From Octopus bimaculoides (lineage: Eukaryota): a stretch of DNA of 34,080 nt. Both the position numbers and the translations under genes were made by a program. The notes under the pieces were generated by a model, which did not search any database, was not told the origin of the DNA, and saw only the letters and a program-made list of their open reading frames with translations. Of this stretch, positions 4,854-32,081 are shown piece after piece; the first letter of the stretch is position 1; the number at the start of each line of letters is the position of its first letter. Where the stretch lies: positions 126,288,448 to 126,322,527 of the forward strand of contig NC_068985.1 of the NCBI RefSeq assembly GCF_001194135.2, written 5' to 3'.

Positions 4854-4975
4854 CGACATTGTGATAATCCTTTGACCAATGGATGTAAGGGAAGCAATGA
4901 ATTTCTCAAAGTTACTCCGCAAAGACTTACCTCCCTTGTCCACGTAACACAGGAACATACATATATATATGTATG

Positions 4976-5006
<31 letters not shown>

Positions 5007-9400: not shown

Positions 9401-9791
9401 CTACATTATATGCATTAGTAAAGTGTAAAATAGCAAATATCCTGATAACGTGGAATACTTATTATTCCCTAAGTTTTTAATATATATATATATATATANN
9501 NNNNNNNNNNNNNNNNNNNNNNNNNNNNNNNNNNNNNNNNNNNNNNNNNNNNNNNNNNNNNNNNNNNNNNNNNNNNNNNNNNNNNNNNNNNNNNNNNNNN
9601 NNNNNNNNNNNNNNNNNNNNNNNNNNNNAAATGTGAAACAATATAAAAGTGAAACTATTTATAACTTAACTCCGTCGAGTTATTCTTCGAGTTTTGAGAC
9701 GTAATACGAACCAGTTATACCACACAATGCTTCATCAAAAGTATTTCATGTTATATATATATAACCCAGTGCATCACCGGGGCCAAGAATT

Positions 9792-9823
9792 GGTGCAGGC
9801 GTGGTTGTGTGGTAAGAAGTTTG
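9792..9823 (+). mobile_element. 5' part of a tRNA-derived SINE head (family 2), split by an insertion
   Basis: ggtgcaggcgtggttgtgtggtaagaagtttg continues seamlessly as aagaagtttgcttcctaactacatggttccg at 11101-11170. Confidence 0.8.
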
Positions 9824-11100
9824 AAAAAGAGTTGGCAGATTATTTGCCAACTGTCAAACATATAGCTCGGGGGTGGGAGGCCAAATTTGCAACGGTGTGG
9901 TTGCTGTTTGGCACTCCCGAGGAAGCTTGCAAATTTGCAAGCGAGCCCCTCCGTATTGTGGGTGGAAGCTGATAAGAGCCTGGGTGTGTGGGCTGCCGCC
10001 TGGGATAAATCCCCGGTGGATAGAAGAGACTGTTCCCAGGGATCTGGGTGGCAGCAATTCCAGGCTCCTGAGTCAAAATGATGCCTGTAGCTGTTTGGGT
10101 CGGAGCAAAAGCTGTTTTGACCCTTTGGACCCAATCAGCTCAAGACCTTGTTTTCCCTGATTTTTTGAAGATGGCCGGGTTGAGGTACCCGTTGATACTC
10201 GAGGGACGCCCCCCCCCCAAGTGTCACCTGTGCCTGGAGCCTGGCCATATCAGGAAGAACTGCCCCCAGGGCCGTAGTAAGGCCCTAGAGCAGGAAAAGG
10301 AAAGGTGCCCCCCCCATTGGAGGGGGAGACGGTGGAAGTCGTGGAAAAGGTTGCCTCCACGAAAAAAAGAAAGCGGAAGAAGGTGAGCAACAATGGCTGC
10401 TCATCGAGGGATCCGCAGGTTGCGGGAAAGGAGGTCCTTCCGGTTAAACCAACAGAGGCCCCTGCACTCGCAACCCAAAAGAAAAGGAGAAGGAGGGAAA
10501 ATGGGATACGGCAGGCGGATGTTGATACACCGTCGGCATGTCCCGATGCTTCATCGGTGGGAAGGGTGCCACCGATGAAGCAGACTGTGAGTGGGACAGT
10601 GATTGCATTGTCTTCTACCACAGGGGAGAGGTCGTGGAGTGCTACCTGGATGGCATACTGGACCGTGAACGGTTAGAATTCAGGTGCCTGGACTATCCAG
10701 AGTGGCCTCCACAGGTGAACGCGGAAGTTCTGAGCAACTCAGAGTTGTTCCAGATAATGGCCTCCTTTAGAAAGGAAGATTTTCAATTCCTTGGAATAGG
10801 CCCCGACTTGTCACAGCAGGCTTGCTGCCTGCGGGCGACAAAAAAGTTGCTCGGGGAGGAAGTTTAATGAGGCTTAAGTGCCTATTCATTGATTGTTAAA
10901 TTATGATTGTTCGATTTGATTTGATTGTATGTAATTTGAATTGTAAAAGAACAGTGGTTTCGAGGGGTTTTCGGTCGGCGGGCGCCGAATACCCCTCCCA
11001 TTTATAACATTCGCATTTTGTCATTTCCCTTTTCATTAATGTAAATGTCCAGCCCGCATAGCTTCTATGTAAGGCCTTCATGGCCAATTTCCATGAAATA
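9824..11100 (+). mobile_element. ORF1-only (Gag-like) retroposon, 5'-truncated, 10-bp TSD AAGAAGTTTG
   Basis: TSD at 9814-9823 and 11101-11110. Frameshifted ORF with RRM-like segments ('FGTPEEACKF', 'AWVCGLPP'), zinc knuckle 'CHLCLEPGHIRKNC', basic linker and C-terminal domain ending TAA at 10867. About 230 nt of 3' UTR with AATAAA at 11097-11102. No EN/RT. Confidence 0.8.
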
Positions 11101-11110
11101 AAGAAGTTTG

Positions 11111-11170
11111 CTTCCTAACTACATGGTTCCGTGTTCCCTGCGAGGTAACTTGGGCATGTGTCGTCTATTA
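11111..11170 (+). mobile_element. Remainder of the split family-2 SINE
   Basis: cttcctaactacatggttccgtgttccctgcgaggtaacttgggcatgtgtcgtctattata. Confidence 0.7.
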
Positions 11171-11171
11171 T

Positions 11172-11335
11172 ACACCCGACAGGCGTCTTTCAGTTTCCGT
11201 CTACTAAATCTACTCACAAGGCTTTGGTCAGCCTGGGGCTATAGTAGAAGACACACAATGGGACTGAACCCGGAACCATGTGGCTGGAAACCAAGCTTCT
11301 TACCACACAATGACGCATGCGCCTCCACCACGGCC
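11172..11335 (-). mobile_element. tRNA-derived SINE, family 2
   Basis: gggctatagtagaagacac...gggactgaacccggaaccatgtgg...aagcttcttaccacac is the reverse complement of the family-2 head and body. Confidence 0.8.
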
Positions 11336-12059
11336 TTCTCTAAATATCTAAGGCTTCTTGACTTTTGTTGTCCCCTTATTAGCTCACAACACTCCTTATG
11401 TGTGCGCTGGTGTTCCTGATTCAAACCACTGACAGGAAGGTGAACTGGAGCTTATTCATGAACAGAGATCAGAGACAGACAGGATAATGTATTCATAACT
11501 GAATTTCAATTACCTCGGATTTTCATTCTCCTTCTTTTCCTCTTCCTTCTCCATCAACTCCTTCACCTCATAATCATCATCACAAGTATATTGTCTGATA
11601 ATCATATCAAAGGATAATGCTAGAGACTAAACAATATACTTGTGTTTTAATTCACCTCTGAGAGTAAGTAAAATTGACTTGTTTAGCGGAGAACAGATAT
11701 GAGATAAAAGCAATTTCATAGACAAATAAAGACCCATATATACGCACGCACGCACACACACACACATGCATGCATGAAAACACACATACACATATACACA
11801 CATGCACGATCTCATACACATACAGATAAATAAAAACCGATCCAAATTAGCAACAAAGCCAAAGTCGTTGAAAGCAAAACAGAAAAAAATAACATCAGCG
11901 AAAGTGTTCTTTTTTACATTGGGTTTATAGAAACAAGCAATTAAAGTTGTCTGACCTTTGACACGTACTGTGTGATCCTTTTACGTAGTGTAGGTTCACT
12001 TCCGTTTTATGGTTGAATTTTACATTGGCATGCTTGCCTGCTTACAAGCATAAAAGTGA

Positions 12060-20749: not shown

Positions 20750-23100
20750 TGTGCAGATTTGTACGCTTTATGTATGTATTCTCATCCATATAGTTGCATA
20801 TCTAGACATGCTTGTATATATTTAAATGATAAACTTCTGGGTAGTTTTACAGATTTTTACAGTTCCAGTGATGGATTGAATGTGTAGTCTTCGCATTAGC
20901 TTTCTCCTTTCTGGTTTTGAGAAGCCTAATTTCTCAAGATTGGTATTTTGGTAGTGTGTTACATATCCCAGGGCCCCAATAATTACAGGTATAAACCTGA
21001 ACTTGTAGTCTGCATGGAGTAACTACAGATTTCTCAATAGTTCAGCGTAGGCATTCTCCTTTCATTGATCTTCAGCTTTATGTTAACATCCGCTGGGCAG
21101 CTAATTTCCACAACTGTGCACAGTTTCTCTTCTCTGTCCCAAATCATTACATCTGGTCTTTGTGCTTACATTTTATTCGGGTCTTCACTGGGACATTCCA
21201 CCAGCATTCATTTTTATTATGAGTGGCTATGGCTTCTACCATGTTGTAGGTTCTTATTTCTTTGTTCTAGCTACAACATCATGTCTCATCGTTAGATAAT
21301 ACCTTGATGACATTTTTGGGCAACTGCTTATGATGTGGGTGATATGTTCAGTGTGAACTCCACAAAGTCTGCATCTGTTGTCACACTTTACCTGCATCAC
21401 TATCCCTTTTACGCATCAGGTGCTTGGTTGATATTTCCTGTTCCTGGATTGCAAACGCATACCTTTCAAAGTTGGAGGTAGTAACCCGGCTATTCGTCCT
21501 TGATAGACTGCTTTGATGATTGATGTTATGCTTTCTCCTAACATATCCATGCATAGTCTTCTGCTCATATAGGCTCATCCTTTCATCTGATGATCCGTTG
21601 TGGTAGAGTCGTGAGACTTCTTTGGGCATGTATTCTAGGTTATCAGACACAGAGTGTTGCTCAAGGAGCTGCCTTGCAAGTCTTATGATGTTATCAGCCT
21701 CATGTATGCAAACTTGGTCAAGGGATTCACTTCGACACTTGGTGGTTAAAAGATGTTGCCGAAGGGACATGATGCGACATTCAAAGTCATTTTGGGTCGA
21801 TGTTGAGCCTTTCTCTCCTTGTTTTCGTTTTAGGTAGAGGCTGTCTACGTCACTGTTTATGTGGAAATTATGTGTGCTTGTTAGTATTGTTCGGGTTTTC
21901 ACATCAATGGCTAGGATCTCATCAAGTGTCCAGTCAAGCAGCGCAAATGCTGGTATGTGTTCTGACTCTTTTTCATCTTATGCATACTCTTTGCATAACG
22001 TTTCAAGTCATCCAGAGAGAAACAGTGTTTAATATTGGTATTTCTGTTTTCTTGTGAACCAGTGAGATAGCCTTCAGCCTTCCTTAACATGAATGACAAG
22101 GGGTTTACGGAAAGTTTAAACAACATCACATAGAGGCTGTCTTCTTGGAATATGCCTTTGCGATACTGTTTCTATCGGTGATAATACAGTCACTCTTTTT
22201 GTTTAATTTCAAGATGGTGGCCCACGATGAAGTCAGGTCAGGTGTGGCTTTAGCAAGTTGAAGAGCTTCCTGCATCCATGAGTGGGGAGCAGAATCAAAA
22301 GCTTTCTTGTAGTCCAGCCACATTGAAACTAGGTTCCTCCTATGCTCTAGCACCTCTGACATCACAGTTTTGTTGATTAACAACTGCCCGGCACATCCTC
22401 AGACTCCCTTCTTCTCAGCTGCTTGATCTGTTGTGATAATGTTATTGGTTTCACAATGGTCCTGGAGGAATTGGCCGGTAGTCTTTTGCCATGTGGTTGG
22501 TTCTGCATTTGGGGATCAATTTTTTCTCTGCATTTGGGGATCATTTTTTTCTCTTCCAAAGCTAACCAGTGCAGTATGCTACTGTTCCTATTGAGAGCTT
22601 GCTTGTGCAGATTGATAAGATATGGTCGGTAGAATGTTAGCTTCTTGTACCAATATCCAACAATCAAGTCTCTTCCAGGTCCTTTTCCATTTTGGAGTTT
22701 CTGGATCACAGTTGCAAGAGTTTCACCATCAATGTTGTATGTCTTGGATGTAACGCAGGAGCAATAACTTTTTCGGATTTCTTCCACCCACAGAGCATCT
22801 TGGTTAAATTCCTTCTCTTCACTTCAGATTTTCCTCCAGAAGGAGTCTATGTCTTCTCGTGAAGGGGCTTCTGTGATATTCACTGCTCCTCCTCTCATGA
22901 TTCTGTATACTGCTGCCTGGTTACGGTTAAATTTTTTGTTTATTGTTCTTCTCTCAGTTATTCTCTTCTGATGTCGGAGTTTTTCAGACAGCAATTAGCC
23001 CCTGCTTGAGGGTAATCAGTTTGCAAGTGGGTGCCCCCTTTTTCCTGTCACCAAACATCATTTCTATCTCCCTCTTTACTTTGTTGGTGGGACGTATAAT
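20750..23100 (-). mobile_element. R4/Dong-like non-LTR retrotransposon (RT, CCHC, restriction-like endonuclease), 5'-truncated, decayed
   Basis: Minus-strand motifs 'GKGPGRDLIVGYWYKKL', 'WLDYKKAFDSAPHSW', 'GIFQEDSL', 'LDDLKRYA', 'AFAIQEQEISTK', 'CRLCGVHTEHITHIISSC', 'RHDVVA', 'RPDVMIWD....TVVEISCP', 'IPVIIGALG'. Confidence 0.85.
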
Positions 23101-30790: not shown

Positions 30791-32081
30791 TTAGGTCGTC
30801 AAGTATGAAATTTGTAGTAAGGTATATAGTAAACCTTGACAGCTGCTCATTTTGCGCCATTATTATATTTTGACAATCTTTATTTTTTTGTTAGAAAGCT
30901 GATACATCTATTTCTTTATTCTAACTCATTTTGCGCTTTATAAATTATTTATAAATCGTTTTTTCTATTTTTGTTTAGAGGTGGATAAGTTGGAAATTCG
31001 TAGTTTTGAAATATGAGTTCTTTCTTGGAATACAGCATCACAGGCAGCTCGGAATATTAATGGAGTATTTTATTCTAATGAAATACAGCAGACAGTTGGT
31101 TTGCAAAATTTCGCTCCGGTAACTTTGACCTCACAAATGAGCAGCGCGGTCGACCAGAAGCAAAGGTGGATAATGACGAACTAAAAAAGCCACCGTCAAG
31201 TCAGATCCATCTCAAAGTGCCCATGAATTATCGTTGTTGTTTGGTGTAAGCAAGCAAACAATATTGACTCACCTAGTTCAAAAGGGTAAAGTGGAAAAAG
31301 TTGGATAAGTGGGTTCGACATGAACTCAATAAAAACCAGAAACAGCAACGTTTGGAAGCCTGCATTATGTTACTTTCTTGTCACAAAATGAATCATTTTT
31401 GAATCGAATTGTAACGTGATGAGAAATGGATCCAATAGAGCAACCGTAAATGTTCAGCACAATGGTTGGATGAAGACTATCCACCAAAACACAGTCCAAA
31501 AAGCAAAATTCATCAAAAGAAGCTGATGGTGTGTGTTTGGTGGTCTGGTGCAGGTGTGATCCATTATGATTTCATTAAACCTGGCTCATCAATCACGGCC
31601 GAAGTATACTGCAGCCGACTGGACCAAATGAAGCAGAAACTTACAACAAAAAAACAGCCTAGATTAGTCAAGAGATCCCCTCCTATTTTATTGCAAGACA
31701 ACGCCAGACCACACATCGCCAAAAGGACATTGGCGAAACTACTGGTGTTGGAGTTGGAAGTTCTCTATCATCCACCATACTTACCTGATCTTCCACCCCC
31801 CACCCCCACCCCACTGACTACCATTTCTTCTAGAATTTGGCTAACTTTTTGATAAGAAAAAAATTTAATTTTGACGATGTTGTAAAACAGGCCTTCCAAG
31901 ATTTTATTGACTCAAGATTGCCAGGCTTTTACAGTTCCGGGCTGGACAAGCTACTGCTGAAATGGCAAGAATGTATTGACAATATGGGTGCATACTTTGA
32001 TGAATAAAACTATTCCTTGTATTTATAAAACATTAGCAAACTTTTTCTTCTTTTCTACAAATTTCATACTTGATGACCTAA
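30791..32081 (+). mobile_element. Full-length mariner (D,D34D) transposon, 1291 bp, inactivated transposase
   Basis: 27-bp TIRs at 30791-30817 and 32055-32081 (1 mismatch), TA TSDs at 30789-30790 and 32082-32083. Motifs 'DEKWI', 'KKLMVCVWW', 'LLQDNARPH', 'HPPYLPDL', 'TDYHFF'. Frameshifts and stops. Confidence 0.95.

Follow-up and report, generated by a model that had tools for sequence, protein, structure and literature searches.

Results

A 1277-bp insert interrupts a tRNA-like SINE head

We analyzed a 34,080-nucleotide stretch of DNA from Octopus bimaculoides (RefSeq assembly GCF_001194135.2, contig NC_068985.1, positions 126,288,448 to 126,322,527 of the forward strand), referred to here as the window, which contains a candidate protein-coding retroposon inserted into a tRNA-like short interspersed element (SINE). 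The insert is 1277 bp long, lies on the + strand at positions 9824-11100, and is a 5'-truncated retrocopy; a related copy in Octopus sinensis (locus L001, described below) reaches further 5'. The GC content of the insert is 51%, compared to 39% for the window. The exact decamer AAGAAGTTTG, to which we assign no strand, is found immediately to the left (9814-9823) and to the right (11101-11110) of the insert, and these are the only two copies in the whole window.

The window contains 137 exact 10-mer direct pairs, low-complexity sequence excluded, with a spacing of 500-3000 bp, and because these are comparable to the pair flanking the insert a 10-bp repeat by itself is weak evidence. We found that joining 9792-9823 directly to 11111-11178 restores an empty site, which aligns gaplessly across the junction to four other SINE heads, three from O. 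sinensis loci and one from a second SINE of the window. Since the restored site is gapless, we take the AAGAAGTTTG repeat to be a target-site duplication. The interrupted SINE head consists of a 5' part at 9792-9823, which includes the left duplication, and a remainder at 11111-11178, both on the + strand and both aligned to the same SINE heads. An earlier note on this DNA, made from the sequence alone, had reported an exact 10-bp duplication around 1277 bp and a split SINE head whose halves rejoin perfectly, and in both respects it was right. The second SINE (11177-11330, - strand) directly adjoins the interrupted head in inverted orientation; therefore the insertion target is a head-to-head SINE pair. 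Rfam gave no match in 9629-11500 and ARAGORN called no tRNA.

Between the two copies of the duplication the insert begins with AAAAAG and ends with GAAATA. We searched the insert for terminal inverted repeats and found none. Lacking these, and lacking TG...CA ends with a 4-6 bp duplication, a DNA transposon and a solo long terminal repeat were both rejected.

The reading frame of the insert is frameshifted and truncated at its 5' end

Protein searches returned five relatives of the insert. The closest is P0001 from O. sinensis (LOC115225585, 281 aa; locus L001), with 58-62% identity; it was the one protein found, at 58% identity, by a word-indexed search of 5.8 billion clusters. Two further relatives came from an exhaustive HMMER scan covering 1.84 billion representatives, namely P0003 (O. 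bimaculoides A0A0L8G4Z0, 386 aa) and P0004 (O. sinensis LOC118764025, 254 aa, locus L002), and a linker-free profile search added P0005 (O. bimaculoides A0A0L8G1L3) and P0006. P0002, a run of plant-type CCHC repeats, was set aside as an irrelevant match.

The open reading frame (ORF) of the insert is split into five frame pieces, at 9826-9948, 9951-10070, 10072-10302, 10299-10586 and 10577-10864. Compared to L001, its closest relative, the window copy has lost 28 nt after 9947, 2 nt after 10071 and 1 nt near 10293, and it carries an indel directly behind 10586. It also has two in-frame insertions compared to L001, and there are no nonsense codons in its corrected frame. This suggests that the copy decayed through four frameshifting indels after insertion. 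One of the in-frame insertions sits in a C10 run (10209-10218) and the 1-nt deletion is near a C8 run (10308-10315). These C-run-associated indels could be sequencing errors in a gap-rich draft; the 28-nt deletion cannot.

Since P0001 starts 49 residues ahead of the first codon of the window copy, the latter is truncated at its 5' end inside the first of two RRM-like modules. Consistent with this, insert positions 1-611 are 69% identical to the L001 copy, which reaches further 5'. The last 3 nt of the left duplication (TTG) recur in the P0001 locus immediately ahead of element position 1, which we read as 5'-junction microhomology of the kind seen at truncated insertions made by long interspersed elements (LINEs). 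The earlier note had missed the truncation of this copy, and we correct it here.

Taken together, the duplication, the gapless empty site and the truncation at the 5' end show that the insert is a retroposed copy, and we interpret it as a 5'-truncated retrocopy of an RNA made of ORF1 and an untranslated region (UTR), produced by target-primed reverse transcription. Filler DNA at a double-strand break, a DNA transposon or an assembly artefact would each account for extra sequence at this site by other means. Six N-gaps interrupt the draft sequence of the window, one of them 185 bp upstream of the insert, and two of the indels described above lie at or near C-runs, both of which leave some room for an artefact. 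Against this, an exact 10-bp duplication around a SINE that is restored seamlessly is what characterizes a staggered-cut insertion, terminal inverted repeats are missing, the insert is contiguous and free of gaps, and truncation at the 5' end compared to a related ORF fits reverse transcription. We therefore consider an origin other than retroposition highly improbable.

The encoded protein has the layout of a Jockey-like ORF1

The first ORF piece (9826-9948, + strand) covers the C-terminal two thirds of the first RRM-like module and is collinear with P0001 residues 50-90; this module is a putative RRM, assigned from its sequence pattern alone. ORF pieces 2 and 3 contain the second RRM-like module (9951-10221, + strand), which is interrupted by the 2-nt deletion after 10071 and aligns to P0003 residues 45-121. 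It is followed by a CCHC zinc knuckle, CHLCLEPGHIRKNC (10222-10263, + strand), and then by a Lys/Arg-rich linker (10264-10576, + strand). The linker has basic runs resembling nuclear localization signals at 10356-10385 (STKKRKRKKV) and 10476-10499 (QKKRRRRE) and a SACPD motif, and is frameshifted near 10293-10302.

The knuckle of the window copy matched Pfam zf-CCHC with E = 0.0026, under the gathering score, and that of its relative P0003 scored above it. When a family profile was compared to the PDB, CCHC knuckles were the sole matches. We then modelled P0003 with AlphaFold from a four-sequence alignment, which gave a pLDDT (the per-residue confidence score) of about 70 for residues 45-140 only. 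Within this part, residues 45-121 are predicted to form a beta-alpha-beta-beta-alpha-beta unit, and the PDB structures that Foldseek matched to the model were mostly RRMs (IMP3 RRM12 with E = 1.9e-3, then Musashi, SART3, HuR and Fox1).

One or two RRMs followed directly by CCHC knuckles define the "Jockey-like" class of LINE ORF1 proteins (PMC3905857), and the RRM-RRM-CCHC order of that class is what we find in the insert. We conclude that the window protein is, as predicted from its sequence and from the model of P0003, a LINE-type ORF1 of Jockey-like layout. The call of a Gag-like ORF1 in the earlier note is sound on the same grounds, and its description of a single frameshifted ORF with RRM-like segments, a CCHC knuckle, a Lys/Arg-rich linker and a C-terminal domain of about 95 aa agrees with the five frame pieces and four frameshifts reported here. 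Jockey-like ORF1s usually precede an ORF2, whereas in the insert two more parts come after the knuckle, a basic linker (about 100 aa) and a C-terminal domain (about 95 aa). Protein database searches found no sequence match between the insert protein and any described LINE ORF1. An L1-type ORF1p (coiled coil, RRM and C-terminal domain; Pfam Transposase_22) was rejected, as Pfam gives zf-CCHC only and the PDB profile matches are knuckles only.

An orphan C-terminal domain looks coding

The C-terminal domain has 96 aa (10577-10864, + strand). We found no match to it in Pfam, the PDB or the protein databases, including the 1.84 billion representatives. In this region 113 sense codons are open in a row, a run matched in 92 of 2000 shuffles, and the ORF at 10538-10867 is open for 109 codons. 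GC at the three codon positions is 58/35/63 in the domain compared to 59/45/62 in the knuckle region. The P0001 locus is collinear into the first 13 aa of the domain (ACPETSS...DDLVIFFHKGGAV compared to ACPDASS...SDCIVFYHRGEVV in the window), after which the L001 copy is cut off by another repeat at position 10975. Since the open run is long, codon-position GC resembles that of the knuckle region and L001 is collinear, the domain looks coding. The sequence that cuts off the P0001 copy (L001 10976-11195) is itself repeated, recurring at L001 17873-18081 (85%) and 4858-4978 (90%). A single-sequence AlphaFold model of the C-terminal domain was unreliable (pLDDT 52.7), and Foldseek with this model returned noise only, with E of 0.2 or worse.

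Both the window copy and the L001 copy shift frame by -1 near the boundary between the linker and the C-terminal domain, at points about 25 codons apart. Because the two shifts are at different positions, the ancestral ORF was continuous through the domain. Programmed -1 frameshifting at the boundary was rejected on the same distance between shift points; in addition, no slippery heptamer precedes the hairpin found there in the window, and P0004 is in frame once a SINE is excised. This hairpin, at 10547-10582, lies inside the coding sequence at the boundary and has a perfect 14-bp stem (TGCTTCATCGGTGG / CCACCGATGAAGCA, -28.2 kcal/mol, z = -5.6, 0 of 200 shuffles). The homologous bases of L001 could form a 7-bp stem which is not significant alone (z = -1.6). 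By eye, two pairs of this stem are changed on both sides compared to the window hairpin; an automatic alignment did not recover the stem.

Relatives are dispersed, those examined are intronless, and the RRM-CCHC part is under purifying selection

The more distant relatives P0003, P0004 and P0005 share the order of knuckle, charged linker, C-terminal domain of about 90 aa and stop, and P0003 also has an RRM-like module before the knuckle. The five relatives form two deep lineages. P0003 and P0005 are 90% identical in the linker and C-terminal domain. In addition, the window contains a 35-aa fragment, LKTEEAVLLPIYLGRRVSRVRVDEIPFEAAVILLG (2433-2537, - strand), that is 54% identical to P0003 residues 28-62. 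This fragment adjoins an assembly gap and appears to be a remnant of the second, deeper ORF1-like lineage. The near identity of P0003 and P0005 together with the fragment indicates that the superfamily is dispersed and multi-copy. P0001, P0003, P0004 and P0005 are all from Octopus, and the protein searches identified no relatives outside this genus. Scans of metagenomes and viral contigs found no relatives.

All copies for which DNA was examined (L001 and L002) are intronless. In L002 the "intron" of the LOC118764025 gene model (10443-10675) is a SINE-like insertion with a 14-nt duplication, GGTTATGATGTTTC, and excising 242 nt produces one continuous P0004 ORF. The P0004 stop is followed by an A-rich tail, and Pfam found no endonuclease or reverse transcriptase match in the 4.8 kb downstream of it. 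Further on, an A-run and a SINE that follow the stop are flanked by imperfect direct repeats of about 45 nt (AATAGACTGT.AA.AA.GTTTAA..., at L002 11047-11090 and 11520-11563); these are either a tail repeated in tandem or a duplication that has diverged and is unusually long.

In L001, P0001 lies in an intron of another gene and stops before the C-terminal domain. At P0001 residues 191-195 (L001 10571-10585) Phe replaces the first Cys of the knuckle, giving KFHLC compared to KCHLC in the window. Since this Cys is lost and the C-terminal domain is missing, LOC115225585 looks like a decaying retroposon copy. No target duplication could be defined for either the L001 or the L002 copy. We also observed a SINE head fragment on the same strand at L001 9452-9489, 510 nt upstream of the P0001 start codon, which ends ...GTAAGTAGCTTGCTTCC, 5 nt beyond the point at which the SINE head of the window is split. 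If L001 9490-10000 is a 5' UTR, the first nick in a SINE head would have fallen at almost the same place for both copies, which would hint at a target preference.

We compared the window copy with L001 over the 148 gap-free codons of the RRM-CCHC part and obtained a synonymous divergence (dS) of 0.90 and a nonsynonymous divergence (dN) of 0.17, giving dN/dS = 0.19 (bootstrap 0.11-0.30). The earlier note had proposed looking for a dN/dS below 1, and this is what we found in the pairwise comparison of window and L001, for the RRM-CCHC part only. A ratio of 0.19 implies that most of the divergence accrued in lineages whose protein mattered. We interpret this as purifying selection on the RRM-CCHC part along the lineage, and the window and L001 copies as members of deep paralogous lineages rather than as orthologues. 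These data support the view that the protein belongs to a real, selected family restricted to octopus.

A selected protein with few relatives might also be a host protein. In L1TD1-type domesticated genes an ORF1-derived sequence is kept by selection without an ORF2, and such genes are single-copy and syntenic. If a LINE ORF1 had been domesticated in octopus in this manner, the insert would be a processed pseudogene of the resulting host gene, and the family would be a few paralogues plus dead retrocopies. The small number of relatives, their annotation as genes (NCBI lists P0001 under three isoform accessions, and P0003 and P0005 come from gene models of O. bimaculoides) and the strong purifying selection all fit this explanation. 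So do the 10-bp duplication and 5' truncation, which together with an A/G-rich start of the target are also typical of LINE-mediated processed pseudogenes. However, the octopus copies differ from L1TD1-type genes in that they are dispersed and decayed, lack introns and have a target duplication at their ends; the single "intron" among the relatives examined is a SINE insertion, and P0001, located in the intron of another gene with its knuckle Cys lost and without a C-terminal domain, looks like a decaying copy. The recent duplicates P0003 and P0005 and the fragment in the window indicate transposon-like dispersal. Finally, the insert differs from processed pseudogenes in lacking a poly(A) tail, and no parent gene with introns is known. 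We consider descent from a domesticated gene to be improbable.

The reading frame is followed directly by a non-coding tail

The reading frame ends in a double stop, TAATGA (10865-10870, + strand), and an AT-rich non-coding 3' tail occupies 10871-11100 (+ strand). After the stop there are 233 nt of sequence with 39% GC, an abrupt fall to the genome level. These 233 nt contain no open frame, with stops in all three frames and no ORF2 start, and we found no endonuclease or reverse transcriptase within the insert. The tail carries a GC-rich hairpin at 10962-10997. Compared to shuffled sequences, the whole tail folds somewhat more stably (z = -2.4), and the hairpin has z = -2.5.

The sole AATAAA hexamer of the tail (11097-11102, + strand) crosses the junction between element and duplication, AATA coming from the insert and AA from the duplication. 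Because two of its bases belong to the duplication, it cannot be counted as a signal borne by the element. There is no poly(A) tail or A-run at the 3' end of the insert. The earlier note had described a UTR of about 230 nt ending at AATAAA, with no endonuclease or reverse transcriptase. The closed tail and the missing enzymes are borne out by our analysis, and the terminal AATAAA is not, since it straddles the junction and no A-tail follows. These data support a source RNA in which about 230 nt of non-coding tail came straight after a LINE-type ORF1, with no endonuclease or reverse transcriptase.

Other features of the window

Two further sequences in the window resemble parts of transposable elements. 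A fragment of a mariner-type transposase is found at 31466-31852 (+ strand; Pfam Transposase_1, E = 5.6e-23). At 21381-22787 (- strand) there are two ORFs (173 and 136 aa) which look like reverse transcriptase (...KGPGRDLIVGYWYKKL...) and have no Pfam match; these may be what is left of an old LINE that has no relation to the insert.

Discussion

Our data suggest that the insert most likely originated as a HAL1-like, ORF1-only non-autonomous element of an old family restricted to octopus, to which we give a probability of roughly 0.5. Several observations weigh against this reading. Without a poly(A) tail or a LINE-type 3' motif, the source RNA may have had its true end elsewhere than at the end of the insert, and since neither a poly(A) tail nor a known terminal motif is present reverse transcription could have begun internally on a longer RNA. 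The junction between the ORF1 stop and the tail has been seen in this one copy only, and the tail did not turn up again in about 75 kb of octopus DNA (the window, L001 and L002). Neither of the other two loci fills this place: L001 is truncated after 13 aa of the C-terminal domain and is uninformative on the junction, and the tail of L002 is interrupted by a SINE, so that its true end is uncertain. A total of five relatives in 5.8 billion clusters and 1.84 billion representatives speaks against a high-copy family with intact ORFs. The C-terminal domain of the window copy had an hhalign probability of 0.1% for homology to that of P0003, P0004 and P0005, and by BLASTP the piece shared with these proteins was the SACPD motif ahead of the domain and nothing more. 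Finally, we identified no partner LINE with the same ORF1 or tail.

Much of this could also be explained if the insert were a one-off product of a bicistronic LINE, arising either from a source copy with ORF2 deleted or from internal priming at an A-rich patch of the spacer between the ORFs. The junction would then be unique and there would be no family behind it. Such an origin is in keeping with the missing poly(A) tail and terminal motif, with an AATAAA that is partly target sequence and with a tail seen only once; the A-rich end GAAATA beside the AAGAAG of the target fits internal priming by microhomology, and octopus has active LINEs with an ORF1 (PMC13282606). Against it, the tail of 233 nt is closed in all three frames and has no ORF2 start, and its abrupt fall in GC to the genome level is UTR-like. 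The distant relative L002 likewise lacks an endonuclease or reverse transcriptase downstream, and among the 5.8 billion clusters and the 1.84 billion representatives no protein was found in which an ORF2 is linked to this ORF1. We consider the one-off product unlikely, though a contender to be kept in view.

Under the favored reading of an ORF1-only element, the ORF1 protein would coat its own RNA, and the endonuclease and reverse transcriptase would be borrowed in trans from an autonomous LINE. The bottom strand of the SINE head would be nicked at 5'-CTTCTT^AC-3', with cDNA synthesis starting from the A-rich end of the RNA, or close to it, and halting inside the first RRM module. The 5' end would then be joined through the 3-nt microhomology, and a second cut staggered by 10 bp would give rise to the duplication. 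At such a nick site a run of pyrimidines gives way to a purine, as would be suitable for an L1-like endonuclease. The missing A-tail, on the other hand, would better suit a partner LINE that recognizes a structured tail. L1-Tx1, CR1, RTE and Dong-R4 elements have recently been active in O. vulgaris (PMC13282606). The earlier note had proposed that an RNA of ORF1 and 3' UTR was reverse transcribed in trans by an L1/Tx1 enzyme. Retroposition of such an RNA is consistent with the duplication, the empty site and the truncation; the enzyme may have been of the L1/Tx1 type.

ORF1-only retroposons are a kind already known from HAL1 and HeT-A. The sole protein of HeT-A, which is found at Drosophila telomeres, is Gag-like and has CCHC knuckles, and HeT-A depends on reverse transcriptase provided in trans; in this it is like the octopus insert as we read it. 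It differs in targeting chromosome ends, in its very long 3' UTR and in belonging to the Jockey clade, while the octopus insert lies in an interspersed SINE. We know of no sequence similarity between HeT-A and the insert. HAL1 (half-L1) of mammals is likewise a non-autonomous LINE derivative, mobilized in trans, in which ORF1 and a 3' end are kept while ORF2 is missing. In contrast to the octopus insert, with its RRM and CCHC modules, orphan domain and lack of poly(A), HAL1 has an L1-type ORF1p (coiled coil, RRM and C-terminal domain) and a poly(A) tail, and it is present in thousands of copies in mammals compared to the one junction seen in this mollusc. HAL1 ORF1-only derivatives arose several times independently (PMC5753468). 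In the literature on cephalopod transposons that we searched we found no ORF1-only family described; the earlier note likewise knew of none.

A wider reading is possible, and we put it forward only tentatively. Octopus would harbor an old superfamily of coding non-autonomous retroposons (lineage age above 100 million years, from dS of about 0.9), each an ORF1 with the order RRM-RRM-CCHC-basic linker-orphan domain followed by a structured tail without poly(A). These would be under purifying selection, would parasitize the enzymes of autonomous LINEs and might prefer the tRNA-like SINE head as a target.

Whether the insert was a single event or one of many copies, remnants of a retroposon ORF1 is a better annotation than host genes for LOC115225585, LOC118764025, A0A0L8G4Z0 and A0A0L8G1L3. 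If the insert was a single event it is an ordinary dead retrocopy. If many copies share the junction, it would represent a HAL1-style ORF1-only retroposon outside mammals and Drosophila, built on a different class of ORF1 with an orphan domain. Such a family, if true, would bear on why some non-autonomous retroposons keep a coding gene, a question tied to cis-preference and to competition for the reverse transcriptase of their partner, and on the unusually repeat-rich genome of the octopus.

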